Assembly (NCBI GenBank): GCA_900088475.1
Contig: FLMG01002524.1
Coordinates: forward strand, 1-35,058
Length of the DNA stretch: 35,058 nt
From: Hyphochytrium catenoides
Lineage: Eukaryota; Protista; Hyphochytriomycota
Direction of reading: 5' to 3'
The notes beneath the pieces are model-generated. The model was not told where the DNA came from. It searched no databases and saw only the letters and a program-made list of their open reading frames with translations. Positions within the stretch are counted from its first letter, which is position 1; every line of letters begins with the position of its first letter. The position numbers and the translations under genes were made by a program. Below are positions 2,407 through 35,058 of this stretch, piece by piece.

Positions 2407-3907
2407 NNNNNNNNNNNNNNNNNNNTCCTGAATGACCATAGTAGCATGGCCCGTCCCAGCCCTGGGGAGCCTCATCAAGAAGACGAAAGAGACTTTATAG
2501 GAAGTTCCAAGCGAAGAGAGCTTGCGCACGGGCGACAGACGATAGCCTTGATGATAGACCTGGCTTCTCAGCTGCAGCCCGGCCGTAAGATGCTTTGTGA
2601 TGATGATAGCAGAAGAGTCATTCAGCCAACAAGTCGGTGCGTTGCAGGACACGGACATTGAGAACTCAGAGAAGACGATCCAGTCTTTCTTCTGCGTAGA
2701 GTCCCGACTCCAGGCAAGTCGACAGCAGGGAGGAGGGTCTTTTGCCTCTTCTTCTCTCCACTTCTGCCACCTCCTCTGCTTCTTCTTCGTTCATCTCAAT
2801 GATCTTCTTCTTCCGCTTCTTGTGCTTCCCTTTGCTTTTCCCTTGCCCTCCTCCATCATCCCTGCTGCTGCGTTCAGCCTCCTCCGTCTTGTGCCCCGGC
2901 CGCGTCTGTGCCGCACCTCGTCCTTTTCCTGGTTCTTCCACCTTGTCCGCTTCTCCTTCGGTCCTCCTCCTACTGCCTGACCTCTTGGCCTGTGCCATGT
3001 ATCGCTGACAATATTCTCAGTCTCTCTCTGTCATTCCTTGTCTTCGCCCACCTCTTCCTTGTCTTCTTTCTTGCTGCTAATAGTGTCATACTCCTATTAC
3101 TTCTCGCCTCATCTATCTTGAACCTTGCTGGTCCTATACGTAGGAAGTGCTATACTTGTCAGTCAATAGACCAGCAGGTAGCGTCGAGAACAGAGAAAGC
3201 AGCGATGCATTATATGGTAAAGGCCAAATCAAAGTGCAGAAGAAGCGGGAACAACGACGTGGTGAAGGCTTTAGCCTTCTCTCCTTGAACCAGGATCTGA
3301 CCTTGGTCTTTCCTGAGCACAAGACATCATCGCCTTTGGCATCGAACGACGAGACCATCAGCTGCTGCCAAGGATAGTGAGGCCAAGGAAAGCACTACCT
3401 CACGTTATCTATTAAGTCGAGTGTGAGCGAGAGCTCGCGGCTAATACTTTCCAGTAGAGGCGCCGCCTCGCGAGCATTTGCTCCTAAAATTTATCGAACC
3501 ACCTACCTTTTCCCTTATCCTCTCTGCCGCTCTTTCCCCCCGACGAGCACGCGCTGGTCATGAACTTCTTTAGCTGCTTCGTCTTTCATAGCCTTTGACT
3601 CTTCTTCTGTCGTTGGCCTCTCTAACCGCACTTATCAACAGCTTTGAAGGAAAGGCATAAAGATGAGAACATGTCACATGATTGCAAGCGATTGTAAGCC
3701 TGTGCCGTAGTTAATGTTAAACGATTTAAATTATCTCTATAGCTTTATCAAAGGGCGGCATTGCATTGAAGAAATAGCAGTATAAGAGTTGCATCCACCA
3801 CGCTAAGAGCTTGTCCAGCTTCAGAACGCCACCGTTGGCAGCTCCATACTCCCGTGCTTTAAGCCGATTGACCCAGAGAGAAAGCACGAAAAGACAATGA
3901 TTCAGTT

Positions 3908-5495
3908 CTAAGCCGTGGCTGGCGCTGGTACCTTTGGTGTAGGTGCGGGGGCCTTTGGTGTAGGGGCTGGCGTAGGTGCAGGGGTCTTTGGTGTAGGAGC
4001 TGGCGTAGGTGCAGGGGTCTTTGGTGTAGGGGCTGGCGTAGGTGCAGGGGTCTTTGGTGTAGGGGCTGGCGTTGGTACCGCTGGAGGATTGGATGGAAGG
4101 ACACGTGCCCTTTGACCGTTGTAACGAACATCATGAGAGTTGTTCGGTGCGCAAGACGCATACTCATTGACCTCAAAAATGTTGCCTGCACATCTGTCAG
4201 TGAACTGATCACAGCACATGGATTGCGGGCATGCTTTGTTATTCGTCGGACCGCATGTTCTGTCCTTGGTGATTTCCAAGCCAGCCCAGTTCTTGGTAGG
4301 CCGTGGTGCGCATTTGACCTTATTGGTAGGGTCGAAACCCGCAAGCTTGGCTGCACGACACACGTTGATCAAGCCGTGACCGTAAGCATCGTCTCTCCNN
4401 NNNNNNNNNNNNNNNNNNNNNNNNNNNNNNNNNNNNNNNNNNNNNNNNNNNNNTGCGAGTGCCCCTGGTGGTAATGTAGGCCCTGTTAGGGGTGCTTGTA
4501 TACGTATCTTCTCCTGGTGCAGCGAGGTCAACCTGGGCATTGCGCTTTGAGTCATAGACAACCTCTGCAAAAGCATCTACGGATCCCACGGAGATGACAC
4601 TGTCATAGGAAGCAGGGTAGCTCACTTGAGCAGCGCTATAGTCGCCTGCGCCGGCGACAAGCAAGGCTCCTCCATTGTAGAGTTGACGGTATGCCTCTTC
4701 CTCAGCGGCGGAATAGTCGGGACCGAGCAAACCTAGATGAATGATCACTTTTGATGAACCAGCCTCTTCCTTGCACTTCTGAGCGGCCGCAATAAGGTCC
4801 GAGGGATAAGCCTGGCAATAGTTGTTGAAGATGTTGAATGAGCGGATCGCTACACCACGTGCTACGCCAATGCCACCACGGGAGGCTATAGTTCCAGCGT
4901 ACCGAGTCCCGTATGCACAGCTATCTACGAGATCTCTGTCGGCTCCACTGAGAGGGACGCCAGCCAGGCCCTGGTGCTGACGTTGGACGCCAGAGGAAAT
5001 CACACAGACTTTCAACGCACTGGCAGGAGCTCCGGCGGCATTGAACGGAGTCACGTCGGCACCAATCATCTTTACACCATAAGTGAACGACGAGACTTGT
5101 TGCAGTTCCCTGTGAACAGCCCGAAGGGTACGAGAACCTCTGGGAGAGAGAGTCTGAGGGACGGAAGTGGAGTTGCGGATAACATCTTTCTCTATTTTGG
5201 CAACATCAGGAAGAGAGGACAGAGCCGCGATGGCACTTTCAGAGGTGATCTGGACAGCTTTGGCCCCAATGATAGCGAGGTCATGCACCTTCTTGATATG
5301 TGAATGGTCGTTGATGAAGGAATCCAACTTGTCAAAGCTTGCCTTAGAAATGCCGAGCTTGTCAACTCCCGCAGAGTCTCTCACTGCTGGGTCTCTTTTC
5401 AAGTACACGATGTACCGCCCTGGGCTCTGACTATCAGACGCAGTCGCCGCGCAGGCGAAAAGTGCCATGAGGATAACACGTTTAAGAGTCAACAT
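3908..5495 (-). CDS. Secreted subtilisin-like (S8A) protein, predicted catalytically inactive: signal peptide, I9-like prodomain, S8 domain, Cys-rich hevein/CBM18-like module and Pro/Thr stalk
   Basis: ORFs 4320..5495 and 3908..4576 join across the N gap 4399-4453. Visible elements are the signal peptide MLTLKRVILMALFACAATA, the prodomain RYIVYLK, S8 motifs KVCVISSG, YGTRYAGTIA, GIGVARGV, LLVAGAGD, YPASYDSVISVGSVD, QVDLAAPG and TTRGTR, and after the gap RDDAYGHGLINV, CGPTNNKACPQSMCCDQFTDRC and (PAPTPKT/PAPT)n ending at TAG 3908-3910. No intron is visible. Confidence 0.9.
3911..4085 (-). repeat. Coding tandem repeat for the Pro/Thr-rich stalk (33-nt unit, [11 protein letters not shown])
   Basis: Plus strand shows repeated ggggtctttggtgtaggggctggcgtaggtgca units. 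Confidence 0.9.
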
Positions 5496-8400
5496 CTTGC
5501 TACGGTGGATCTTTCCTCCGGCTTATCTCTCTCTCCTTGGTTATGGAAAGGTCTTGGGTGCTCCTGTTATAGGTTAGGACTTGGGACTGCGTCTTCAGTC
5601 TTCGGAGGAAAGTTGGAAAGTGATGGGTAGAGAGCTCTATCTGTGGTCGCCAGGAGGATTACCTGGGAAACCTCGAATGGGGCAGATAGACGCGCACTAA
5701 CCTGGGCTTCAGAGGGGAATAGCTGTTCAAATGTCCAGCAACTTACCGCTTTACCGCTTCTGCTTATAGTCAGGAGAATGCATTCTAGCTCTTTTGGCCA
5801 TACTCGTCCCCGTTATATCCCTACAAGATATTTCTTCGGCGAAGCTACTGGCTCTGGCAACCGCCCCGCATATTGAGTTTACCTCGTGGTAGATGCTGCT
5901 CCTTCCTTGAGGATCAGAGAGGAAGCAGATCAGGAAGACAGCAGCCAGGCATTCCCTTCCTTCGACCAAGAGGCACGACGAGAGCGAGAAACAATCGATG
6001 TGTCAAGGATGGGGAGGCAACATCCCCTATACACGTGATTTGAAGTGTCAGATGGATTGCCATTTTGAGTGTCGTTTTTACCTTTGAAACAGAGCCAACG
6101 GGGCGACGGGCACTAGCGGTCTTTAGTACTCAGCCAACGGAACCGCAAGCGATCCACATCGATCCTTCATCGGAGGTAGTGGATATTTCATGGGAAGTAC
6201 GAGGGTAGTACACCCTACTATCTCAGCAATGAATAGCTGAGCAGCTCTCGTTCTACAGTGAGAGAGTGCGGTCCTGGCCGTGTCTGAGACGGAGAGCAAC
6301 CTTCGCAAGTCAGCGGGCTGATCCATCGACGACCCAACCAATTATCCCTGCGCTATGGAGGATGTGGCTCTACTTGTTACCGTTTCTGTGGACCTTATCA
6401 CTCCTGCGAAAACGTCTACAGCGTTTGGACACCGACAATGTACCATCAAGGGATACCTACCCATTCTTTCCTGCCGAGAACGTCTGGGATAATATTTAAA
6501 AACGATAATGCTCAGATCAAGAAGGGCCGTTGCCCAATTTACCTTCTGTATGAACGTGCACCAGCCCTGATCCTACTGAAGAGGTTCAGATAATAATAAG
6601 CTGCGGTGGGCGGGATCAGCTTTACACCTTTTGTGAGATTAGAGGCACATTAGTGTTAGAAGTTAGAACTATCACGACTTTTTTCCGGGCTGTTATTCTC
6701 ACGTTGATGCATCCGCGACCAGCGACTACTGCTAGCACTTGTCAGAGGTAGAAGGATGAAGGAGAAGGGGAAGAAGAAGAAGGAGGAAGAGAGAACAAGC
6801 GCTACCAAAGCCAAAAAGCCTTAGTCTCTTCATCGGCTCTAGACTATCCGCTCCACACTCATTTTTTAGAAGAAGGAAGAATCATAGTTGACTTCTTTGA
6901 TAACGAGAGGAGAAGAAGATGATGAACCGCCGACGGCGGTTGTAATTATTGAGGGGATGGAATAGAAGAATAGTTATTATCAGGAAGGACTACTGAGCCC
7001 TTCGGAGTATTCTAATGCGTTTGCGCTTACTCCTAGTGCTACGCTGGCCTCGTAAGGTATCAATACCACTTGGGCACGGAGCAATAAAAGAGCAAAAAAG
7101 TTCCTATATATGAAAAAAAAGAAATCAACAGTAGTTCTACTACCGTTTTACCGAGGGACACAAACAAGACGGGCTTATCCTTACTATTCTAAAGGTTTTA
7201 GGACATCCCCCATCTCAAGACCGCGCCTGCTGTTGGCGTTGTTGGACGGTCAGGAAGGCATCCTCGCCAATCATAGCATTAAGTCTGAGACCTAGACCAT
7301 GGGAAGGTGGACGGAGACACAACGGTAGTAGTAGAACTATAAGTAGGGCAAAGGAAGGGCATGGAACTAATAATAGCCCTCTGAATCTGTCTTGGGTCGC
7401 CCTATCCTTAAATGTCGACATATGCGGTGCTGTGGCCATCATGATTGGTAGCTCCGCCCAAGGCTCTTCTCCAACGATCCAACAACCATGTAGTTCCTAT
7501 TATTAGTTCATTCCAGCGAAGATCTCTTAGACTGCCATGTTCGTGTTCCTTTAGCACTGCTCTGTACAATTAACGCAATAAAGTGGATTGTTAGTAGGCA
7601 GTCCTGTTTTCGCTGTGTTGGGGTGGCTTTCATTAGAAATGATGGGCTGGAGGAAACAATGAAACCAAGAATTTCATAAGACGCACACGGAACACTAGAG
7701 TGACGTCCTTCTGGCTGGGGTTGGTTTATGTCATATTCCTATCCAAGGAGTTCACACGGCAACCACTATCGCCACGGCCGCCGTGCGGGTCGTTCTACCA
7801 AGGGCAATCTGATCAGGCCGGACAATCCTTTAGTTTGACAAAAAGCTTGCGCCTGCGCGGATGTTCTTCTCAACACCTGCAATGCTCCTTCGAGGCTTTC
7901 ATCAACTCTTTCCTCAGCCTGAGAAAGCCTCGTAGCAGACGGAGCCAGCAGCCACCAATCATACTGCCCGTGACCCTCATTAGAAACCAGACATTTTGCG
8001 TGCCATCCATCCAGAAGGGCTCGCGAATGGCTGGATTAGCTGTGGGAGAGGGCAGATGATAAAAGTGTTTCACTAACGCTTTTGACCCTGGGTGGTCGCT
8101 TCTTTGAGTGACGACACGAGCTCCAGTGTTGAAAGATCTGAGGTGAGCTGCACAGCCATGAAAATTTGAGGTGACTGGTTAGCGAGGTTTAGAATGACTG
8201 TGCCGTCTATTAGGGGTCCGGTACATTGTTTGATTATTGTCGTGACATAATCAACAAAAAAAAAGAGGACACCCAGAAGATCCACCACTGAGAAGTCGTC
8301 ATCGCGGGAGCTACAAGCTTGTAATAAGAGACGTGCCTTTGTTTGTCAATCTCCCTTCTGAGTAGTAGTAGCTCATCCATTCTGATGTCGTAACATGAAA

Positions 8401-19969: not shown

Positions 19970-22900
19970 TCAAATAATAGCAGGTGTCGACCCGTCACAG
20001 TCTGGTGGCAGGTCAAAGGCATCCTCATAGCTAAAACGCGCGGAGAAGGGAAGAGCGGAGAATCCTAGCCCTCGCTTTGCAAACCCTTTCCATATATCGC
20101 ATACATTTCTCCCTTCATTGTTGACTCTGTCTGCCTGCAGGATGGCATCTCTTGCCTGGATAAACGTTGGGTTGCAGGGCTGAAGCTTCATACCATCGAC
20201 AATTAGCTGGTTCATCACCGTGTTTCCCTTCCCGCTCCGCGTGTCTTCCCTAACATTCGCTGTATAACCCAGCTTGTCCACGAGGTTCCAATAGACTTCA
20301 TAGAGCATACTCTGCCAGACGCTGCCTCTCTTGTGCGCCTTGGACGGATAGTTCTCTTCCCCCAAGAAAGAGTAAGTTTGCGGGTTGATGGTCATGTTGG
20401 TGGAATAAGGAAAGGGACGAAGGCCTTCCTCTTTCCCTGACACATACTTTCCTAGGACGTAAGAGGCTGTCTCTCTCTTGTCAGAAGCTCTCATCCCTAG
20501 CGTTATCCCAAAGAAATCGCTCCAGCCCTCGTTGAGCCCGGCGCTTTCGTTGAATCTTAGGCAATTGGCGTTGTCCGGGCCTCCCGTCAGCCGTTGAGAG
20601 AGACCGTGCGTCATTTCGTGTATGATGACCCCGTTATCGAAGGCACCATCTCTATAGGGCGTTGTGTTCGTCCATCTAATAGAAGTATAGTTAGTGATGC
20701 TAAACGTAGAACAATTTGAGAAAGAGAGACAGACAGACAGAGGGACAGAGAGAGAGAGAGGGACAGAGAGAGAGGGACAGAGAGAGAGAGAGAGAGACAT
20801 GTATCGTACATAAAGAGTCTCATGCGGGCAGGTTGGCCGTCAGGAGGAGTAGCAAACTTGGCATTGTTCTTTCCTGAACCGTCCTGACAAGTCGCCACCA
20901 CTGGGTCATAGCCCTAACAAAGGATATCAGAAGGGAGGCGAATGAGCTGAAGGCAGAAACGGATAGGCTAGAAAGAGGGAGAGAGAGAGACAGGAAAAAA
21001 AGGAAAGGACTTCTCCCTTGGCACTCAATGCGCGCAAGGGAGTGGAAGTAACAAAACAGTAGTAGAAGAAGCTCTTAATGAGGACTTAGGTTTTCTTCTT
21101 TCTCCTTCCCTCTCTCTCTCTCTNNNNNNNNNNNNNNNNNNNNNNNNNNNNNNNNGCCTCCATTCGGAACCACCTGGAAGTTCCCTGCTGCGGATGTGAA
21201 GCCGTAAGCACTGAACAGATCGTGCATAATGTTGGCGACATAGAACATATTCGTGATCGACGCGTTTCGATACGACGCTGGCTCCTGCGTGAAGTCTATG
21301 GGAAAGTCAAAGGTATAAGAAGGAGACACGGCCGCGAAGATATCGAGAATATCTGCCTCAGAGCCTGAAAGGTTGTCCATGGCCAGCACGTTGTTTCCCT
21401 TGGTGATGCCCTCGGAACCGCGTCCAGAATCGTGCCAGCCCAGATGAGAATAGCGCAGATCCTGAGGGTCTGTCACGAGAGCGAGAGACCCGTCAAGAGG
21501 ATCGTTGAGGCCTTGAAATGCTGGGAGGACGCGGTAGGAGACATTCTTCCTTCCTCCTGCGGTGTCTCCCTGTCTTTCCTCTTCATCGGCCAGCTGGTCT
21601 TTATGCTCTCTTCTCGCGTTACCTTTATCAGCAAAAAGAGGGGACGAAGGAGGAGAAGGTGTCGAAGAGGCTGAAGACGAGGGAGAAGAGGAACGGAGGT
21701 ACGTAAAAGGCTCTGTCTCTTCGTCCTGTCTTCCTCTAGAGCCATGATGGTCGTCCTTTGGCTGGACAGCTCTCTGAAGGATTTCCTGCGTGGAAAGGAA
21801 GTCTCTGTCTCTCTCCTTTAGCGCTGGGTACTCGATGGCGATGGTCCCAACCTCCACTCCGCGCTGGGAGAAAAGAGGGACATCCGAGTGAGAATAGTAG
21901 TCAGAGACAGCAAGCACGGCCCCACTCTCAGCATCTACAAATACATTGAGCCTGTGAAGAGGGGAAGAAATGAAGGTTAGTGAAGGGAAGAGTGTCGGAG
22001 AGAAAGCTCGACAACAGAGAGACGACGATAGCTAAGAAGAAGGAGCTCAGTAAGGAAAGGGAGAAAGACAGTCCACCCTAAGCTAGCGAGAGAAAGAAAA
22101 GCTGGAGCAACTGAGGACACTTAGGCGAGGAACAATGAGAGAGTTGCGGAGAAAGTGAAGATCAGGAGAGAGGAAGGAACAGAGAGAGAGAGAGAGAGAG
22201 AGAGAGACGGGATGTGAGGGAGCGAGAGCCGGAGAAGTCTGGCTTACCAACTGTTGATGAACTCTATCTCCATGCTCCAGACCAGCCGCGTCTCTCTCTC
22301 AGCGGTGTGATAGTACTTTAGACACGCAGAAACATTTCCAAGAGAGAAGGAAGCACCAGAGATCGTCCAGTGAGTATGCACATCGTTGACGATATCTTCC
22401 GTATGAGAAGCCTGCAGTCTCTCTCCTTCCGTAGAGAGAGAAGCGCTTGTAGCAAAGCGAAGAAGAGCCTCAGTTGGAGAGAGAGGGGGAGGAAAGGGCT
22501 TTGTGTCGTTCTCTCCTCCTCTGATGGTATCTTGGAACGTGCTGGACCAGGAAATGACGTTGTTCTCTTTGTCGATTGCGACCTTAAGATATCCGTTTTC
22601 TATGGGGAGACCGTTCAAAAGCTGTCGAAAGTGCGCGTGGAGGACGCCATTATGCTCATCCTCATACTCTGAAGTTATCTTGGCGCCGAGAATGTCCTGT
22701 CCTGTCTCTCTCTCTTTCCCTTGGGATCTCTCTCTTCCCAACGTCTCTTTCTCTTGTCTCCCGTTCGTGTCTCTCGTGTTTGCTTTGTCCCTTCTTTCTT
22801 TTCTGGTCTGGGCTGCTGCTGCGCGCAGTCTCTCTTCCATGAACAGCACTGCTGACTCTGACTGTGTGGAGCCTCGACCAGGAACGAGACAGTCCGTAGA

Positions 22901-23047
22901 AAAGTTTGCAATGGGTTGCCAGTAGGAGACGGCCTGGAAGGTTGTCTTTGCTGTCTGGCCATAGATGGGAGAGAACAGAAGGGAGAGCGCAAAGCAGGAG
23001 ATAGACAGCTGCATGAGCCCGCCTAGGTAGAGGAAGGACAGAGCCAT
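19970..23047 (-). CDS. Secreted fungalysin metallopeptidase (family M36) with FTP/PepSY propeptide; 4 exons
   Basis: Exons: 23047-22248 (TG|gtaag); 21951 to about 21156, with the donor in the N gap (acag|G, giving [19 protein letters not shown]); 20913-20810 (ttag|[36 protein letters not shown]|gtacg); 20675-19970 (ttag|A TGG). Motifs: N-terminal hydrophobic signal, [16 protein letters not shown] (FTP), [44 protein letters not shown] (HExxH), [24 protein letters not shown] and FAKRGLG. Confidence 0.95.
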
Positions 23048-23269: not shown

Positions 23270-24446
23270 GAGGAACCGTTGAAGAAAAGACACGAAGAGA
23301 AGTGATGGATGTTGCGGGTGAAGTTTGCTCATCATCCGGCCGCGCACCTCGCCGTCTGCCATGCGTGTTCCTAGGAACAGAGCATGGAAGAGCTCTGAAA
23401 GGAAGACCTCGACTTGAGAAGAAAGGGGTAGACAAAGTGCTAGGGTATCGAAAAAGAACGGAAGCGAGATAGGGGCAAAGAGAGAGGAAGATGTGAGAAG
23501 AGAGGCAAGAAGAGAGAAGCTGGGGTGCAGCTCAGAGGGCAGTCCACAGCGGTGTGACCTTTGGCTCGTTGCAAAGGATTGTAAATATTCTCAACTGCAC
23601 TACCCCTTTGTCTCTCAGCTCTCCTCTATACTATAGCTCTCACTACTGAAGATGATGAGGTTCACCCCCATTCTCTATCTATCTATCTTTCTGTCTCTCT
23701 CTCTCTCTCTCTCTCCCTCTCCCTCTCTCTCTCTCTCTCTCCCACACCCATAGAGGACGACGTCAGACACCCTACCTCTTATCATGTTCTCTCTTTAGGG
23801 GCTGCCCTCTGCGGCGGTTGGCCCTACTTAGACCCGAGGGGCCAAATGTGGGCGGTGCCCAGCAAAAAACAAGTTGATGAGGAAGAGAAGGGAGCGTGGG
23901 CTGGTAAGGGAGATAAGGAAGCTAAGAGACAAAGGTCAGCGTGCGACGGCGAGACAGAGTCGATTACTTTCAATAGTTAGTAGAGGGATTCACTAGAAAG
24001 AGATATAAGAGGAAGGATAGAACGATAGAACCTCTTGATGGGCAGTCCTTCCCATGAAGCAAGTGAGAGACAGAGTTTAGGTAATCTAAGATTAGGACAA
24101 GAAAAGAGAAAGGGAAGAGAGAGAAAGACTGTCGAAGAGATGTAGCATATGTCTTGCCTGTATAGGCCGTGAAGGGGGGTTTTGGACGCTATTAATCTGG
24201 AATACTTTGATGATTGTTGATTTTATCTATCATAAGAATCACAGGGGGTATACTTTATTACGAATAGCATGGCGAACTCGATTTAGGTAGCTCGAAGGGT
24301 AAAACGGTATCGCAGGTGTTCTACCGGTACTGACTTCCTTGTTGCTGCTCTCTTTTTCTCCTTTTCCTTGTCGCTCTTTCTGCTCTTTCTCTCTATGTTT
24401 CAATTCGTTGTGAGGTGTGACCCTCCCGCCTCGTCGATTGTGTGGA

Positions 24447-24517
24447 TCTCTCTCTCTCTCTCTCCCTCTCTCTCTCTTCTCTCTCTCTCTGTCTCTCTCT
24501 CTCTCTGTCTCTCTCTT

Positions 24518-24552
<35 letters not shown>

Positions 24553-24571
24553 TTCTCTCTTTCCCTCTCTT
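24447..24571. repeat. (CT)n-rich microsatellite
   Basis: Directly visible. Confidence 0.9.
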
Positions 24572-26936
24572 TTTATGGGTCTCTCCGCCTCTCTTACGCA
24601 CACCCACACCCACACAAATAGTGTTGGTGTCTCTCTGTGTCCAGACAAATAGTCTCTCTTTCTCCTATGCCACATTTTTTAAGGGAGGAGTATTCTTGTC
24701 CGTGCTCGCACCCGCCTCCTGCTGCTCTTTGGTATCCTCCTGTCCACATTCCTGTTGTCTGGGTCTTGCTTTACCTGCAACTATGCGCCGCGCACCGGAG
24801 CGTGTTTTCCCCGTGCTCTTTCCTCATTTGTCTTAGTCTCACACCATTATACAGTAACGACATAGCATACCCTGAACTACGATGGGATACTCCTTTGGAG
24901 GAGTTCTACAAAGAACTCGCTCGTCGTTCTCCTCTGTTTTCTCTTCCTCCATCATCTTCAGGATTCAGGAAGCAGCTGCATATTATCCGTCCTCCATCAG
25001 CGTAGAGGAGTGGTAGAGGCCAACTCACACTTCCATCACTTGGTGGTACAGGCACGAGCCTCATCTCATCAGCTGGCTCAACGTGGTAGTCCGAGTACCT
25101 CATATCCGTCATACAAACCACCGGACCGGTCATGATCAATGTTCTTAGCAGAACAGCGTACCAAAGCCAAAGGTTGCCATCGCTAAACTCGATCAATTGG
25201 GTTGGCACCATGAACTGCCATCTGTGCTCCGCGTTGCGAACTTGTGGAGGCAACAGCATCAAGAAGTTCAAAGTTACGGATACAGCCGCAACACCAGTAC
25301 GTTGGCGCTGAGAAAGAGTCAGGGTCGTCCTCGGATAATAAGTGTGAGTACGCTGGCGGCGTGAGTACGCTGGCGGCGCGCGCGAGAGACCTTCCAGGTC
25401 GTAGCCATAGTAGGCCATATGCACTCTCTTAAATAAGCTGCTTCTTCAGTACGAATACCCTCAGTAGTAGAAGCTCTTCTTTTTCTCTTAGATATCAACG
25501 ACGGAGGAAGGGTCAACACTTCCAGATAAGCACTGCCGCAGCGTAGTACTTCAAGCCTTTTAAGCGAATAGACGCGAACGGCTCCCAGTCTAGCAGGAGT
25601 TGGCTAAAGTATGGTCCTGACCGCTATTCGCTCCCGCTGCCTCACAAAGGAGGATGAGGAAGGTGATCACATGATTATTCCGGGCGAGGAACAAGACGCA
25701 GAGCTAGCAGAAGGACGAGGTCCTTGATATCACGGCGGCATAAGGAAATAGTCTTTTGTGCTGAATGCTTCTTCGAACCTTGGTGCCACTCATAGGTCAG
25801 ATTGTTGGCTAACGTCTCTATGGAATCGACTACTATCCAAAAGAGAAGCAAGGGCTGTAACTTCACCACAGACGCCAATAGCATGGAGTCTGCAGTACCA
25901 GACAGTAAGGAGTGATGTCCTCCACCCCTCCTACCATATAGTCAGCCCAGCTGTCCATGTTGTCTTGTCCACTGCCAAGTGCTTAATCAGCAATGCAAGA
26001 AGCGAACTTGATTTTTGAGCCACCGCAACAAGCTGCGCACCACCATCAGTGGTAGCGGTAAGCGGAGAGACATTGTCATTCATTGATGATTGTAGCACAA
26101 CAGTTGCTCTTTATATGTTGCTCAACCCTATTGAACAGCAACTGTGAGGCAACCATCAGTGTTGTCTCCTACAGCTCTCATAGGCACTTAGTGAGTCAAT
26201 CAGGGTTGTCGTGTATCAGGAAGAAGCGACGTAAGGTCCAATGGCATCCCCAAAGCAGCTGCGTGGGGACTATAAAGCCCACTGGCACCCCACAGCGCCT
26301 CTCTGAACGAAGCGCCTACCAAAAAGAAAGCAACCGTCGTTCACGAGTCCATCATCCGTCTAGCCATCGCACACACCTCCTGAAGGCCGCTGGCTCCTTC
26401 TAACTCATGATGCTTGTCCGTGCTCCCTGCCTCAGCCTCGCCCTTCGCTCTCTCATTAGCTAGAGGTAGCCCAAGAAGAACAACTGTCATTCTCTTCACG
26501 GAGACAAGAGAAGAAGAAGATGATGTCAAACCAGCCAAGAGCTATTCCTCTTTGTTGATGGGCATCGTCCATGTCTTTGCCCTTTTGCGCCTTTTGATTC
26601 TGAAGATGATACAGTAAGCACATGATGCAATGGATCAGGAATATGTTCTAGAGAAATGGAAACTTCCCGGGATCTCTATATGTGATATCTGTGATACCTG
26701 GCTTTCCTGGAGGAGGTCTGTGAATCTTGTTAGAAAATGGGGTTCCTTGAAGCGAAAGGAAGAAAGAACAGACAGGAGGTTTTTATCTCAATGTAAGAGA
26801 TATAGAGTAGGCTCAATGATTGAGGTTAAGGGCAATACAGAGTGACTGACGGCGAGAGACAGAGTCATGCGGAGATAGAGTATGAAGGCCTCCCACATCC
26901 ATCACTTTCAGAAGATTTTTCACTCTCTCCCACAAA

Positions 26937-26947
26937 CTCTCTTCCCT

Positions 26948-27023
<76 letters not shown>

Positions 27024-27025
27024 CT

Positions 27026-27068
<43 letters not shown>

Positions 27069-27070
27069 TT
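26937..27070. repeat. (CT)n microsatellite tract upstream of the ABCF gene
   Basis: Directly visible. Confidence 0.9.
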
Positions 27071-27480
27071 CTATCCCGTCTCTATCAACCCACCTCTTTT
27101 CTCTTTCTCTTGGTAGGACCCCTTCCCTCTTCCTCCCAACCTCCACCTCTCTCTCTACGAGTACTTGTTGTCCGCCTCTCTCTCCTTTCCAATCTCTCTC
27201 CTCTCTCGCTCTCTCCGCTCTCTCCCTCTCTCTTTTCTCTCCTACTGTCGTGTATCTCTCTGTCTCTCTGCTGATCAGTCTTCCAAACTCTCAACAACAA
27301 CCTCCGCATTCACCTGGCAAACTCTTGATAAACTCTCTCTCTCTCTCTCTCTCTCCTCTCCCTTACGTATCCTCCTCCATCTTCCAAAAACAGCAAGAGC
27401 GCAAGTGGCAGAAAGTTTCTTCTCTTTCGCTCTCTCTTCCCATCTGAAGCCCAAGAAGAGAGGAAAAGGAGACAAAAAGG

Positions 27481-29279
27481 ATGGCGGAGACAAGCGCTGA
27501 GGTGGTCAATAAAGTGAGGAAAGCAGTGGAGAAGGTCCTGCAGAGCATCGAGGACGAAAACATCCTCGAGTACATTATCAATGTCATTGCAGACTCGCCC
27601 ATCGAGGCGACCAAAGTGGATCATCTTCAGGAGACAGTCGGTCCTTTCCTTCTCTCTGCTGGCTGCGTAGAAGATGACGATCAGGTGGCGGCCAAGTGCA
27701 CGCAGCTGGCCGAAGCGCTAAAGAAAGAAGGCGTAGGAGAGAGAGAAAAGAAGAAGAAAGGGAAAGATGACGGCCCAAGAAAGCTTCACATGGACCGTTC
27801 TCTTGCCGATAGAGCGAAGGATGATGCCTCTCAGGCGGACTGGATGAACTTTATGTGGGGCTTTGACAAAGTGAGGAAGGAGAGAAACACGGAGTATAGC
27901 CTGCAGGACAATAAGAACAGGAAAGAGCAAAGAAGAGCGGCAAAGAAAGAAGCAAAGTCTTCGGTGGCGCAGGAAGAAGATGAAAGCAGCGAAGATGAGG
28001 CACCACCTCTGCCTACCAGTGATGGCAATGGAGAAAAGGTATGCACAGAGAAAGAGAGAGAGAGAGAGAGAGAAGAGAGGCACAAATGGCAGAGAAGAGG
28101 CAGGCTGCGGTGTCCTTCTTCCACGTTCTCAAAGTTGTTCCTTTGTTCTCCATATATCTCGCGTAGAGCACATAGCCTAGGACGCCATTCTTTCTTATCA
28201 TGACTCTCTCCCTCCCCTTGCTTGTCTCTTTCTTTCTTCTTCTTCTGTCTCACTCCCTCTTCTCTTCGTCGATAGCTCTCTCGCTCAGGGTTCAAGCAGC
28301 TTTACTGCTTCCCTACCTCCCTTTCTTTACCTTTCAACTTTCTCTTGGCCATATCTTAGCCGCAGTCTCCCTTTCACCAATTGGCAGTTGATCTTTCTCT
28401 CTAACATCTCCGTCTTTCTCCTTTCTCTCTCTCTGTCTGTCCCTCCCCTTTTCTCTTTCCCTCTCTCTGTCTCTCTCTCTCTTGCCACGGCTTACTCTCT
28501 CTCTCTCTTTCGGTCTCTTCCTCTATCTCTCACTTTCGCGCGCTCCTTCTCTCTTTCATATAGGATGTCCACGTCGAGCGTATCACCATTCAGTACAAGG
28601 GCAACGAGCTCCTCGTGGACGCAGATCTACACCTCGTGCATGGCCACAGATACGGCCTCGTAGGGAGGAACGGCATAGGAAAGACAACGCTTCTGAAGCA
28701 CATCGCGCGGTTTGACATAGAAGGCTTCCCGAGGCATCATAGGATTCTGCACGTCCAGCAAGAGGTACACGCAGACGAGAGAAGCGTTCTCCAGACCACT
28801 CTGGATGCCAATGTAGAGCTTAAGAAGCTGAGAGAACAGGAGAAGAAGATGATGAACGGCGGAGATGGAGATGGAGAGATGCAGATGACTGAACTCTATC
28901 AGAGACTCCAAGATCTGGACAGTGACACGGCAGAGTCAAGAGCAAGAGGAATCCTCACAGGCTTGGGCTTCACTCCTGAGATGCAGGATGCGCCGACCAA
29001 CTCCCTTTCAGGAGGTTGGAGAATGAGGTGAGCAAGCAGCAGCAGGAGAAGGCGTGTCTTTCTCCCTCACTCTCTTCAATCTGTCTCTCTATCTCTCTTC
29101 GGGGTCTGCTCACTTCAGCATTTCCTAGCTTTATTCTTGCAAATGTGCCACTCTTTGCTCCGCTTCTAGCCTGTTTTCGATTCTCTTTCTCTTTTTTTCC
29201 TTCCGCCTTGTTCCTTTTAGATGATCTTCTCATCCCTGCCTTCCATGATTTTCGCTCTTTATCTCTTATCTTAAACTCA

Positions 29280-29316
<37 letters not shown>

Positions 29317-31684
29317 CATCTATGATATCTCTCCCTGACTATCTCCTTTCCTCTTTACCTTAGGGTGGCGATTGCTGCTGCTCTTTTTGTGGAGCCTGAC
29401 ATTCTCATGCTGGATGAGCCGACCAATCACTTAGATCTCGAGGCCGTACTCTGGCTCGAGACGTACCTCCAAAACTATGAGAAAACATTGATGATTGTAT
29501 CTCACGACCGCAAGTTCTTGGACGAGGTGATCACGGATGTGGTCCACTTCTATAACAAGCAACTGGGTTATTATAAGGGAGACTATAGGACGTTCGAAGC
29601 CACACGAGAGGAGAGAATGAAGAACCTGAAGAAGCAGTACGAGGCGCAGATGCAGAAGAGAGCGCACATGCAGGAGTTTATAGACAAGTTTAGATACAAT
29701 GCAAAGAGGGCATCCCTTGTGCAGTCAAGAATAAAGGTGCGTCGCAAAGAGGAAGAGACAGAAACAGGAGAGAGACATTGGAGGAGAACGAGAGATGGAG
29801 ATCTCCAGTTGCCTCTCCTTTTTAAATGGCCACCTGTTAAACCTCTCCTTCATGCGTGTTTTGCTGCTCGAGTTCTTTCGTTCTCTCCTCAAGGCCTACT
29901 GCCTTAGTCAACACCGTCTGACGTGATGTGGGACATACCTCCTCTCTCTCTCTGTCCTGTGCGTCTCTCTCTCTCTCTCTCTCTTCCTCCGGGTCTTGGG
30001 ATCTAGGCTTTAGAAAAGCTTCCGCGCATTGAGGAGCCACATGAAGAGGCAGAGTTCCGCTTCTCTTTCCCTCCTCCGGAGCCGCTGGGGCGTCCCATTA
30101 TTCAAGTTGATAGCGTATCATTCGGCTATCAAGCTGAGAAGCCCATCTTCAAGGACGCAGACTTTGGCATTGATATGGAGAGCAGAATAGGAAGTAAGCG
30201 ACGTCTCTCTCTTCATTTTTTCTTCTTCGTGATGTCTCAAGCTTAGAGTTCTCTCTTCAAGTTATTCTGAACCTCCCTTTGGACCAGATGACCGCATTCC
30301 TGTCCCCTCTTCTAAACATGTTCAGTCTCTTTCTTTCTCTGGCCACATGTCCCGTGGTTTTGTTCTTTCTGTTATGTCCTGCGGCGCTCTCTCTCTGTCT
30401 CTTTTCGTTGAAAACTCAGTTGCCTTCACGACGACAATTCCTTCTTCGTTTCTCTGCCATGATCTCTTCTCTCCTCGGACCTAATACTTTGTTTCTTCTC
30501 TCCAGTTGTTGGGCCTAACGGCGCGGGCAAGTCTACCTTATTGAAGGTTATCTTAGGCATCTTGCAACCTCAAAGTGGGCATGTGAACCGTCACATGAAG
30601 CTTCGAACCGCGTACTTTACACAGCACCACACTGACCAGATCAACCTGGACCTTACCGCGGTGGAGAATATGATGACCAAGTATAGCGGCACCAAGGACG
30701 AGGTAAGATAAAGGGCAAAAGGAAAAGCGAAGAGCCAAGCAAGACATGTCATTAAGCAGCCAGCAAAGTGAAGAGAGCGGGAGAACTAGGAAGACAGAAT
30801 CTCACAGCTGTTCAAGATGGGCAGAATGTTCACAGATAGCCAGGGCTGTTCATGGATGGGCAGGGTTATGGCAGAGACGGCAGAGAGAGAGAGAGAGAAA
30901 AGGAGAAGGAGCTGCTGAATGGGATGAAGAGGACTGAAGCAAATAAGAGCAGTGAACCTCATGGACGAAGGAGAAGTGAAGAGAACAAGAACAAGACACC
31001 AGAGTCTCATGGCTCTTTTCGCTTTTTTCCACTTTGTAGGAGGTCCGCCGTCATCTAGGCCGGTTCGGTGTATCCGGAGATCTAGCAATGAAGCCTTGCA
31101 AGAGTTTATCGGGAGGAGAGAAGAGTCGCGTCGCCTTCGCTATCCTGACCTGGCCCAAACCGCACGTTCTTATTATGGATGAGCCCACCAATCACTTGGA
31201 CATGGGTGAGAGAGAGAGAAATCTCTTTTCTCTTTCCCTATCGCATAGCTGTATCACTAGTCTGTTGGCCTCGCTTTGACTTTTCTCATGTTATTGGGAT
31301 CGCCTACCTCTCTCTCTTATATCTGCGCTTTAGCCCTTTTGAGTCTTCAAAGACTCTTGTCCTCACCGCTCTTCTTGGTCTTCTTTATCCTTCCGTTGTT
31401 ATCTCCACGTCTCCTCCTCCTACCTCTCTCTCTCTCTCTCTCCCTCTTCTGTTTTCTATCGTTTCCGTATTGATGTTTCCTTCTTCTCCCCCTCAGAGAC
31501 TATCGATGCGCTCATCCTTGCCATCCGAGACTTTGCTGGAGGAGTTCTCGTGGTGTCACACGACCAGCATTTCATTGAGAGCTGCACTAACGAGCTCTGG
31601 GTCGTGGACAGCGGAGAAGTGAAGCTCTTCAGAGGACAGTTCAAGGATTATAAGAAGGTGGTCATGACCCAGAAGAAGAAGTAA
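27481..31684 (+). CDS. ABCF3: ABC-F family ATPase, ABCF3/GCN20-like (two NBDs, no TM domain); 7 exons, 710 aa
   Basis: Exons 27481-28038, 28564-29027, 29364-29736, 30007-30193, 30506-30702, 31040-31205 and 31497-31684. All introns are GT-AG with consistent phases (2133 nt total). NBD1: [46 protein letters not shown]. Linker: [28 protein letters not shown]2: [43 protein letters not shown]. The N-terminal [12 protein letters not shown] segment is typical of ABCF3. Confidence 0.95.
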
Positions 31685-33219
31685 GGAACAAAAGAAGAGG
31701 GAGGAAGCAAGAGACAGGAAAGAGGAAGAAAGCAGGGGACAGGAATGAGAGAGAAAGTGAAGAAGAAGAGAAGAGACAAAGCAATGGAGAGCCCCGCTGA
31801 TAGGACTCTCTGCCCCAACAGAATGGGACCGCATATGAGCAGACAGACAAAGAGAGAGAGCAAGCAAGAGAGAGACAGAGAGAGGGAGAGAGAGAAAGAG
31901 ACTTAGAAGGGAAATTGAACAACCAATGGAACGCTTGCTTGGAACCGAGGGAAGGATCAGTCAGAAAACATTCTTCAGCGCTTATTTATCGATATTCAGC
32001 TGCTCAAGCCTCTAGAATTGCATCCTTTTCCTCTCTCCTTTCCCGCGCTCGCCTGCTCTCTCTCAAGCTCTTGCCTCTCTCAGCCGGCCCAAGCACATCC
32101 AGTTTCTCTCTCGTTCCTGGGTTCAGCTGGAGCTGATGCGTGCTAACGAACAAGCGAGAGTGACTCTAAGAGCACAACAGCACTATCGGCATGAGGAACT
32201 TCAACATCTCCTCTTCCTTTCATGTTTGACATAGTCTCCTTGGTGTTCTTTCTCTTCCTCGCGCGTGCGCTCTTCCTCAGTCTCTTTGAACTAGTACGAG
32301 TAGGCCTGTTGTCAACAGACAGGACAGTGGACAGTGGCAATAGATGCAATGAGGAAACAAGCGCCGTGAAGACAGAGCTGAGAGAGGATCGATCGCAGAG
32401 AGGAAAGATGGGAAGAGAAAGAAAGAGGTCAGATGGGGAGAGAGAAGGAGGGGAGAGAGAGGGAAAGACGTGAGGGAGAGAGAGAGAGAGGGAAAGAGGT
32501 GAGGGAGAAAGAGAGAGGGAGAGAGGGAACAAGGTAAAGAGAGAGAGAGAAAGAGAGAGACTTATTTCTGCGGCTATGCTCTTCAACCTATCAGCGCATC
32601 AGACATGCTGTTCCTAGACTCCCCGTCCCCTAACCCTGTCCCACGTCACCTCGTCTCTGACCAAACAAGTCCATACATATATTATTGGCAGGGGCATTCC
32701 AAGTCTAACCTAACTCCTAGACCGGACGGGTTGGTCTGGTCCCTAGTTAGAGTGAAAAAAAAATGGGTCTGAACCCAATCATAAACCGCTTTTATTCAGA
32801 ACGGTAGAAACCATTACTGTTTTGTTCTAAAGCCTACTTAGAACTATAGGTACCTTTAGTCAAACCAGCTCTTCTCTATCTGAAAAAGTAGCACATGTCA
32901 TTATGGTAGTCACTCACTCACTGTTCTATCCTAAATCTAAACCTTATTTTAGCGCTAAAAAGTTCTAAAATCTTACTGAGTATTCATTACAGTAGTTAAA
33001 ATTTTCTTGAATCTTTGGAAAGATAAAAACGTAGATTTTACATAGGTTTCAGGAGTAAAGAGACAGTTATATATTTTCAGCGTTTTGTGAAAGTTATTGG
33101 TCAAAGCTTCCCCACCCAAATTGTTGACCCTTCGATCCATCACCATTTTTGCTGATCCAACAAGCGAAGAACTACAGTAGTCGAAGTTGTCCCTCTTTTC
33201 CTCTGTTTCTCTCTCTTTG

Positions 33220-33257
<38 letters not shown>

Positions 33258-33533
33258 CCCCTACTCACTTCTCTTTCTTTCCAAGTATTTCCCTCGCTCT
33301 GTCTCTCTCCTTCACCCTCTCTTTTTTTTTCTTTTTCTCTGTCTCTCTGTCTCTCCTTTCCCTCTACTGGTCTCTTTCTCTCGTCTTCCTGGTCTCCTGT
33401 ACCGTTTTATTAATTTAGAGTAGTAGGGAACCCTCAGCGCCTCTCCCTTCACCGTCACCTTTGACACAAGAGGAGGACCAGAACCCGCCAGAGACGAGAA
33501 GGAAAGCGAGAGAGAAGAGAGAGAAGAAAAGAC

Positions 33534-33535
<2 letters not shown>

Positions 33536-33588
<53 letters not shown>
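33536..33588. repeat. (GA)n microsatellite
   Basis: Directly visible. Confidence 0.95.
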
Positions 33589-33590
<2 letters not shown>

Positions 33591-34098
33591 CAGGCGAAAA
33601 GGTGTGGGAGAAGAGAGGACACAGGGAAGAGGGACAAAAGAAGAGGAGAGAGAGAGAGAGGACATGGACGGAGAGAGGGACGTAGAACAGACAAAGCGGT
33701 GAGAGTATCAGGTTCCACATCCTTCTCAGTTGATCAGTAGTCTGGGTGTCAATCGCATCCTCACCTCTCGTCCCAGACAGCTCCTCCCGCCCACGTCTCG
33801 GATGCTTTCTCTTCGCGTACATTCTCCTCTTTCCTGCTACATCATCAGAGCAGCGACGAATAATTTCTCCTCTTCAAGACCGACGGGCCATGGCGCGATA
33901 AGCCCGCACCTTAAAGTCTATCAATCCATTGCACTCTTTTCCCTCTTCCTCCTTCTGGGCTCCCGGCCCATAGTCTTCTCTCTAGCCCGCGCGCGCTCAC
34001 TCACTTTCGCGGGCTTGCGTTTCTCTCTCTCTCTCTCTCTCTCTCGCTCTCGCTCTCTCTCCCTTCTGTCTTTTAGACTGGGGTTCCATCTGCAAAAG

Positions 34099-35058
34099 AT
34101 GGTGCGTGCACAGGAGCTCTTATTAGCTGTCATAGCGCTATCAGTCTCTCTCTCTGTCTTTGTAGATGGAGCAAGAGAAGCGGGCCCCACTCTCTGCAGT
34201 GTCCAAGAGCCTCACGTTGACTTTGTGGGCGGTGACATCAAAGATGTCCACTCCTTATCTCCGTTGAACTGCTGCGTTCACTGCGGGCAAACACCAGGAT
34301 GCAATGCTTATTCCTGGACCAGTTGGAACAGTGGCACGTGCTGGCTCAAGTCCTTTAGCGCCGATATTGAGAGAAAAGCTGCTTTTGGCGTGGTGTCTTC
34401 CAGGCTGACGCATCCCTCCTCTGTTATCTATGCAGACACCGACATCTTCCTGGCAGATCTAGACGCAGTGCAATCGCCCTCTCCTTCCCACTGTGTCGCT
34501 CTCTGCTGGAGCCGGTCAGGTTGCAAAGGAGCATCCTTTTATCAAGGGACATGCTATCTGAAGAATGCGTACTCTTCCCTCATTGGGAAGCCAGGAGTCA
34601 CGAGCTTTGTACTACCTACCGCATGCCAAATAGAAGAGGACACTGACGTTCAAGGCTTGACCCTTGGCCAGGAACGTGTTGCCATCGCTGAGGGATGCTC
34701 GGAACGCTGTCTCTCTATGCCAGAATGCACTTCTTTCGTCTGGGTCCCTTCCAGTGGCGGGACATGCTACTTTAGAGGCAAGAGCCCGACTTTTGTCGCT
34801 AAGGAGGGCTCTAGAGCAGGCTCCTGTCGGCAAATTACCTCTCCTCCTGTGGTTCCCACACCAGTTCCTACGCCTAGGCCAACTCCTGCACCTACGCCTG
34901 CCCCAACTCCCAGACCCACTCCAGCGCCCACGCCTGCCCCAACCCCAGCGCCTACTCCCAGACCCACTCCAGCGCCCACGCCTGCCCTAACCCCAGCGCC
35001 TACTCCCAGACCAACTCCAGCGCCCACGCCTGCCCTAACCCCAGCGCCTACTCCCAGA
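34099..35058 (+). CDS. Secreted or surface protein with three PAN/Apple (PAN_4-like) domains and a Pro/Thr stalk; runs off the right edge
   Basis: Manual translation from ATG 34099, open for 320 codons: signal [24 protein letters not shown]; PAN1 [52 protein letters not shown]; PAN2 DTDIFLADL...[25 protein letters not shown]; PAN3 [11 protein letters not shown]...[17 protein letters not shown]...GGTCYFR; then (PTPA/PTPR)n. It is missing from the ORF track because no stop lies in the window. Confidence 0.92.
34855..35058 (+). repeat. Coding tandem repeat (12-nt PTPA/PTPR units) of the mucin-like stalk
   Basis: Repeated cccactccagcgcccacgcctgcc / ccagcgcctactcccaga units. Confidence 0.9.

Follow-up and report, generated by a model that had tools for sequence, protein, structure and literature searches.

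A subtilisin-fold gene of Hyphochytrium catenoides with its four catalytic positions replaced

Layout of the locus and confirmation of the codons

The window, by which we mean the whole stretch of 35,058 nt of Hyphochytrium catenoides DNA that was analyzed (contig FLMG01002524.1), carries a subtilase gene without introns, comprising ~550 codons when a gap of 117 nt is counted and encoding 347 residues 5' of a run of N (table 1). The protein starts with a predicted signal peptide, which was called by sequence pattern alone; its residues 1-20 have low pLDDT in the structure model, and the N-termini of the two closest relatives, designated P0021 and P0026, resemble it. An I9-like prodomain and the subtilase (S8) domain follow, the latter interrupted by the assembly gap, and the protein ends in a six-cysteine module and a tail rich in Pro, Thr, and Lys. 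In the tail a 33-nt unit is repeated in tandem 4.3 times (3935-4076), a copy number that is uncertain as the short-read contigs break up there. A hevein/CBM18 reading of the cysteine module found no support, given that the Chitin_bind_1 profile scores 8.6 bits (E 3.1), well below its cutoff of 27.8, and aligns across just 20 of its 38 positions; an Atlas search with the module gave no reliable match.

Table 1. Features of the subtilase gene in the window, in the order in which they are read
Feature	Position	Strand	Basis or remark
Whole gene	3908..5495	minus	ATG at 5495, stop at 3910-3908; open reading frames; P0021 and P0026 align collinearly
Predicted signal peptide, residues 1-19	5439..5495	minus	Sequence pattern: K-R, hydrophobic core, A-T-A before S
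I9-like prodomain, residues 26-103	5187..5420	minus	AlphaFold2 model: beta-alpha-beta-beta-alpha-beta
Subtilase (S8) domain as far as the gap, residues about 136-347	4455..5090	minus	PF00082 and PDB phmmer matches
Ser167 (TCC), in V-I-S-S-G, at Asp32	4995..4997	minus	Codon 167; alignments; contigs agree
Tyr195 (TAC), in Y-G-T-R-Y-A-G, at His64	4911..4913	minus	Codon 195; alignments; contigs agree
Substrate-binding strand, G-L-L versus S-L-G	4725..4733	minus	Ser125 to Gly, Gly127 to Leu (Gly127 from motif alignment)
Asp285 (GAC), in G-A-G-D, at oxyanion Asn155	4641..4643	minus	Codon 285; alignments; contigs agree
Arg347 (CGC), in G-T-R, at Ser221	4455..4457	minus	Codon 347; spacing; contigs of three runs cross it
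Assembly gap, 55 N	4399..4453		Junction 4398 to 4454 in X1, X2, and X3: 117 letters
S8 domain end	4304..4396	minus	Y-G-x-G-L-I-N-V-C-R-A-A-K-L-A-G...C-A-P motif, found elsewhere only in P0021 and P0026
Six-cysteine module	4151..4255	minus	No family assigned; absent in P0021 and P0026
Pro/Thr/Lys-rich C-terminal tail	3911..4096	minus	Holds a 33-nt tandem repeat

To interrogate the codons we turned to three public DNA runs (X1, X2, and X3, from two samples, with contig depths of 334, 29, and 3.8), whose Logan contigs we aligned to positions 3800-5600. One contig per run spans 4454-5600, and none of them has a differing letter in a catalytic codon. The X1 contig shows zero differences over this span; that of X2 differs at 4727 (G>T), at 5525 (A>C), and in one further unlisted letter, none of which is reported at a catalytic codon. 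Within the gene, the only differences are 4727 G>T and a low-depth single-base insertion at 4668. The former is found in X2 and X3, but not in the assembly or X1, and replaces Leu257, which aligns with Gly127, by Ile.

The true spacing across the gap is 117 nt rather than 55 nt, as given by the contigs of all three runs. The A at 4454 opens the codon before the gap and the GG at 4398-4397 closes the codon after it, and since 1 + 117 + 2 nt make 120 nt, or 40 codons, both halves of the gene lie in one frame; the apparent frame shift between them is an artefact of the gap size, given the 117 letters that bridge the 55 N. The sequence just 3' of the gap opens with the usual end of an S8 domain, R-D-D-A-Y-G-H-G-L-I-N-V, and the span from Thr346 to R-D-D measures 41 residues, compared with 43 in both P0021 and P0026. 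By this placement, the central helix on which Ser221 normally sits is expected within the gap. It should be noted that the open frame refers to the 509 codons read outside the gap, the gap itself being judged by the length of the bridge only. The sequence-only reading had proposed that the codons be confirmed in raw reads and the gap be closed: the contigs of the three runs show all four codons unchanged, and the gap was closed as to its length and frame.

The remainder of the window contains other genes and repeats. A multi-exon M36 fungalysin gene (19970-23047, minus strand) lies about 15 kb from the subtilase gene and encodes an FTP propeptide (PF07504, E 5e-11) and a catalytic domain (PF02128, E 4e-86) whose H-E-x-x-H motif is intact; it is broken by an N gap at 21124-21155, and most of the Atlas clusters nearest to it belong to the Chytridiomycota. 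A multi-exon gene for an ABC-F ATPase (GCN20/ABCF3-like; 27481-29907, plus strand) has its ABC_tran and ABC_tran_Xtn matches on separate exons. The window is also rich in long (GA)n/(CT)n microsatellites (2278-2660, 24239-24836, 26842-27447, 32143-32586, and 33415-33822), several of them adjoining N gaps, which yield spurious open reading frames of the E-R-E-R or S-L-S-L type.

Family membership, catalytic positions, and predicted structure

The Peptidase_S8 profile (PF00082) matches the window protein with 46.6 bits (E 3.6e-12, cutoff 21.8), which places it in the S8 fold family, and phmmer searches against the PDB gave E values of 6e-20 to an alkaline protease of Pseudoalteromonas (1v6c) and 1e-16 to subtilisin Carlsberg. 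The positions of Asp32, His64, and Asn155 were located through the phmmer alignments to these two enzymes together with a MAFFT alignment of 172 sequences. Arg347, whose codon is 1 base from the N run at 4399-4453, is assigned to the Ser221 position because it comes right after the aligned G-T and because the spacing from the A-P-G motif fits: 17 residues separate that motif from the G-T site in the window protein, and 16 and 17 residues do so in its two nearest relatives.

The Asp32-His64-Ser221 triad and the oxyanion Asn155 of active S8 peptidases are absent from the window protein, and His67 (to Arg), Val68 (to Tyr), and Ser125 (to Gly) are altered as well. In the MAFFT alignment, the D/H/N/S set is intact in 149 of the 171 nearest relatives. 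Most of the remaining relatives are truncated or misaligned at a single position, and P0026 is the only one of the 171 in which, as in the window protein, all four catalytic residues are gone. An S8 fold with its catalytic residues replaced in an otherwise intact reading frame (509 codons read) points to a pseudoprotease. The sequence-only reading had claimed that each catalytic codon is changed and that canonical catalysis is lost. Its proposed alignment to the S8 family bears out both claims, with TCC, TAC, GAC, and CGC found at the codons that align with Asp32, His64, Asn155, and Ser221, and the replacement of the four positions is seen in the independent contigs too.

An AlphaFold2 model of residues 1-347 was built from 91 aligned sequences and reached a mean pLDDT of 84.9 and a pTM of 0.85; the central helix, falling in the gap, is missing from it. 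Residues 26-103 of the model adopt a beta-alpha-beta-beta-alpha-beta arrangement, with pLDDT values of 96-98 across residues 50-100, and would correspond to the topology of an I9-type prodomain docked on the subtilase domain, whereas the linker at 110-132 has low model confidence. The Pfam I9 profile had no match on the window protein, and the matches to pro-subtilisins, in sequence and in fold, extend across this domain. The prodomain, which had been described as intact from the sequence, is thus also confidently folded and docked in the predicted structure.

The top match of the model in a Foldseek search of the PDB was unautoprocessed pro-subtilisin E (3whi; E 4e-21, TM 0.70). The other best fold matches were S324A variants of pro-Tk-subtilisin and PCSK9, with TM values ranging from 0.63 to 0.70, and the prodomain is attached in all of these structures. 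In all of them it is docked on the subtilase domain as in the model of the window protein. These pro-subtilisins and PCSK9 are, however, active enzymes or engineered single mutants, whereas the window protein has four natural replacements. PCSK9, the textbook example of a subtilase acting through binding rather than cleavage, still autoprocesses once, whereas the window protein has lost all four residues.

Relatives and phylogeny

An exhaustive phmmer search over 1.84 billion representative proteins recovered only P0021 and P0026 as close kin of the window protein. Word-indexed searches for closer relatives, such as a dN/dS estimate would need, yielded nothing beyond 31-39% identity except P0026 itself, and scans of metagenomes for closer relatives found none. 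P0021 is the outstanding match (416 aa, E 6e-45, 38% identity across residues 12-337) and is encoded on a contig of run SRR28521185. It shares with the window protein the signal peptide, the prodomain, the S8 layout, and four core cysteines, and its ending V-N-V-C-K-A-A-K-L-A-G...C-P matches that of the window protein. P0021 differs in having the D/H/N/S set intact, a shorter branch, and neither cysteine module nor Pro/Thr tail.

P0026, the sixth match, is annotated as hypothetical protein HDV05_002506 in Chytridiales sp. JEL 0842 (GCA_027604305.1). Its gene is intact and free of introns (432 codons), and the four catalytic positions are occupied by Ser, Ile, Asp, and Thr. At Asp32 and Asn155 it thus agrees with the window protein in having Ser and Asp, and its Ser125 is changed too, but it is only 28-30% identical to the window protein, has Ile and Thr rather than Tyr and Arg at His64 and Ser221, and lacks the C-terminal extension. 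Since both relatives are without the cysteine module and the Pro/Thr tail, these were gained in the lineage of the window protein.

Four active proteinase-K-like S8 genes form the array in which the gene for P0026 is embedded (L002 1-9138, JADGIY010000017.1); these neighbors have I9 prodomains, and their D-[ST]-G, H-G-T-H, and G-T-S-M-A motifs are intact. An origin of P0026 as a recent local duplicate of these active neighbors was considered and rejected, its identity to them being merely 30-33%. At the other end of the window, tandem PAN/apple-like cysteine domains (...G-C-x-A-[FY]-[ST]-W...G-T-C-W-L-K-S; 34186-34830, plus strand) are 42-46% identical to a gene beside that of P0021 (L001 2991-3431, minus strand). 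This match hints that L001, the contig of P0021, may represent a paralogous locus or belong to a related organism.

In the phylogenetic analysis with IQ-TREE, the window protein, P0021, and P0026 form a clade with a support of 99/100, and a C-terminal ending of the form V-N-V-C-x-x-A-x-L-A-G...C-P is found only in these three. The three topologies inside the trio lie less than 0.4 log-likelihood units apart (AU p 0.43-0.48), and activity could possibly have been lost either once or twice within it. The codons of the shared Ser at the Asp32 position differ, being TCC in the window gene and AGT in P0026, so that this Ser does not by itself point to a common origin of the loss. We consider it a speculative and unlikely scenario that the window protein and P0026 go back to one ancient inactivation; they would then represent a long-lived lineage of secreted dead subtilases with an extracellular binding role of its own, marked by Ser32 and Asp155 and spanning a non-fungal protist and a chytrid through old descent or gene transfer, to which the window copy would have added its cysteine module and Pro/Thr stalk.

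Maintenance, decay, and possible role

Of 46 alignment columns with a conservation of 90% or more across 169 relatives, the window protein keeps 33. These include the Gly/Pro framework and four Cys that are invariant in the family; the 13 lost columns comprise all four catalytic positions together with His67, Val68, and Ser125, among others. Two rough tests, both picked after the data had been seen, were applied to this pattern: the loss of the catalytic positions has a hypergeometric p of 0.004 (0.0015 to 0.007 at other thresholds), and in a simple Jukes-Cantor simulation over the 509 known codons, with indels ignored and the catalytic loss assumed to be by drift, the joint probability under neutrality that no stop arises and that three more catalytic residues are replaced does not exceed about 2e-4. 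In a copy that decays neutrally, losses should fall evenly on the conserved positions, so that the uneven loss argues against such decay. Both tests argue against plain neutral decay, and a pseudoenzyme that died recently would look alike.

The branches of the window protein (2.37) and P0026 (3.03) are long beside that of P0021 (1.32) and the median of 0.77, and the long terminal branch of the window protein shows a relaxed constraint on the sequence. It also speaks for the gene being a non-functional copy that decays after duplication, its open frame reflecting recent death or luck. Further in favor of such a copy, the bridge of 117 letters is known by its length and not its content, the look-up of public runs listed none of RNA, although this does not indicate a lack of expression, and a fungal survey treats S8 genes without a triad as pseudogenes, having dropped 89 of 993 subtilase genes (about 9%) with unclear catalytic regions for this reason (PMC5371821). 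We nevertheless regard decay as somewhat unlikely, since the neutral model rarely yields an open frame of this length with such a loss of the active site, the structural positions and the disulfide cysteines have been retained while those of the active site are gone, the length of the gap fits the frame, and the predicted signal peptide and prodomain are intact. In addition, the nearest homolog is 38% identical, so the gene is no fresh duplicate of any database sequence searched. The claim of the sequence-only reading that the gene is maintained rather than decaying finds support in the kept structure beside the lost active site, the frame across the gap, the neutral model, and the well-folded, docked prodomain of the structure model.

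A hydrolase with a non-canonical site, using a sedolisin-like oxyanion Asp and Ser167 or another residue as nucleophile, was also considered. Sedolisins have a Ser-Glu-Asp triad, in which the nucleophile equivalent to Ser221 is kept and a Glu occupies the His64 position, and an oxyanion Asp. The change from Asn155 to Asp introduces this oxyanion residue of the S53 type, and Ser32 and Asp155 recur in the chytrid P0026. However, the positions of the nucleophile and the base are held by Arg and Tyr here and by Thr and Ile in P0026, the substrate strand is altered, and the closest matches in both sequence and fold are classical S8A and not S53, which makes such an activity very unlikely; membership of the sedolisins as such was rejected, as just the Asp at the Asn155 position fits, with Arg at the nucleophile position and Tyr at the base position. 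The chance that the four substitutions are an artefact of sequencing or assembly is close to negligible: contig ends are error-prone and the Arg codon is the one that sits beside the gap, but contigs from three runs and two samples pass 4454-4457 and the gap without a differing letter.

We thus lean toward the window gene encoding a functional, secreted pseudoprotease of the subtilisin fold, a reading that we judge somewhat probable. What is observed is the fold family, the four substitutions as seen in the contigs, a frame that stays open, and a loss that selectively affects the active site; from these we infer secretion, retention of the prodomain, and a non-catalytic binding role. The signal peptide would take the protein into the secretory pathway, where its own I9-like prodomain may help it to fold. 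In S8 peptidases the prodomain acts as a folding chaperone before the active site of the enzyme itself cuts it off, and catalytic mutants remain unprocessed (PMC7200643). With the nucleophile (now Arg), the general base (now Tyr), Asp32, and the oxyanion Asn all absent, the window protein would be expected to cleave neither itself nor a substrate by the subtilisin mechanism. Because S8 autoprocessing needs the triad (PMC7200643), the uncleaved pro-form most likely persists, as the sequence-only reading had supposed, unless another secreted protease trims it, and may act outside the cell as a non-catalytic binding or structural protein, to which the six-cysteine module and the Pro/Thr-rich tail could contribute an added binding or spacer part. 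The altered strand (Ser125 to Gly, Gly127 to Leu or Ile) suggests that substrate-like binding in the cleft has changed too. Of the roles that the sequence-only reading had put forward (inhibitor decoy, substrate binder, or adhesin scaffold), a simple decoy for canonical inhibitors is weakened by this change, and a role in structure or in some new kind of binding would be preferred to it.

Pseudoproteases of the subtilisin type have already been described (PMC7200643, PMC5520436), and the window protein adds a member that is not close to any of them. In Clostridioides difficile, the S8 pseudoproteases CspC and CspA retain their prodomain and regulate the response to germinant signals (PMC7200643, PMC6636752, PMC12880746). 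They provide a precedent for the window protein in combining a subtilisin fold and a substituted triad with the absence of autoprocessing, a bound prodomain, and a non-catalytic role. They are, however, intracellular spore proteins of a bacterium that have lost the triad only partly, whereas the window protein is eukaryotic and has all four positions replaced. CspC and CspA were not among its listed sequence or fold matches, and the likeness to them carries no implication of small-molecule sensing. The Plasmodium protein PIMMS2, a subtilisin-like pseudoenzyme of the ookinete surface that is required for midgut traversal, is like the window protein eukaryotic, with a signal peptide and degenerate catalytic motifs, and its role is extracellular and non-catalytic (PMC5520436). 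PIMMS2 differs in having a transmembrane domain and in the way in which its motifs were lost, and is likened here by description and not by sequence.

The window protein does not change what is known of the S8 family. It represents a eukaryotic case, confirmed in reads, with all four catalytic residues exchanged but the fold, the disulfide cysteines, the predicted secretion signal, and the prodomain retained. Few subtilisin pseudoproteases have a known role, and subtilase genes without a triad are usually thrown out as pseudogenes. The most interesting aspect is the small clade of mixed active and dead proteins: with one active and one dead relative, the window protein provides a usable test case for secreted dead proteases in protists and zoosporic fungi.
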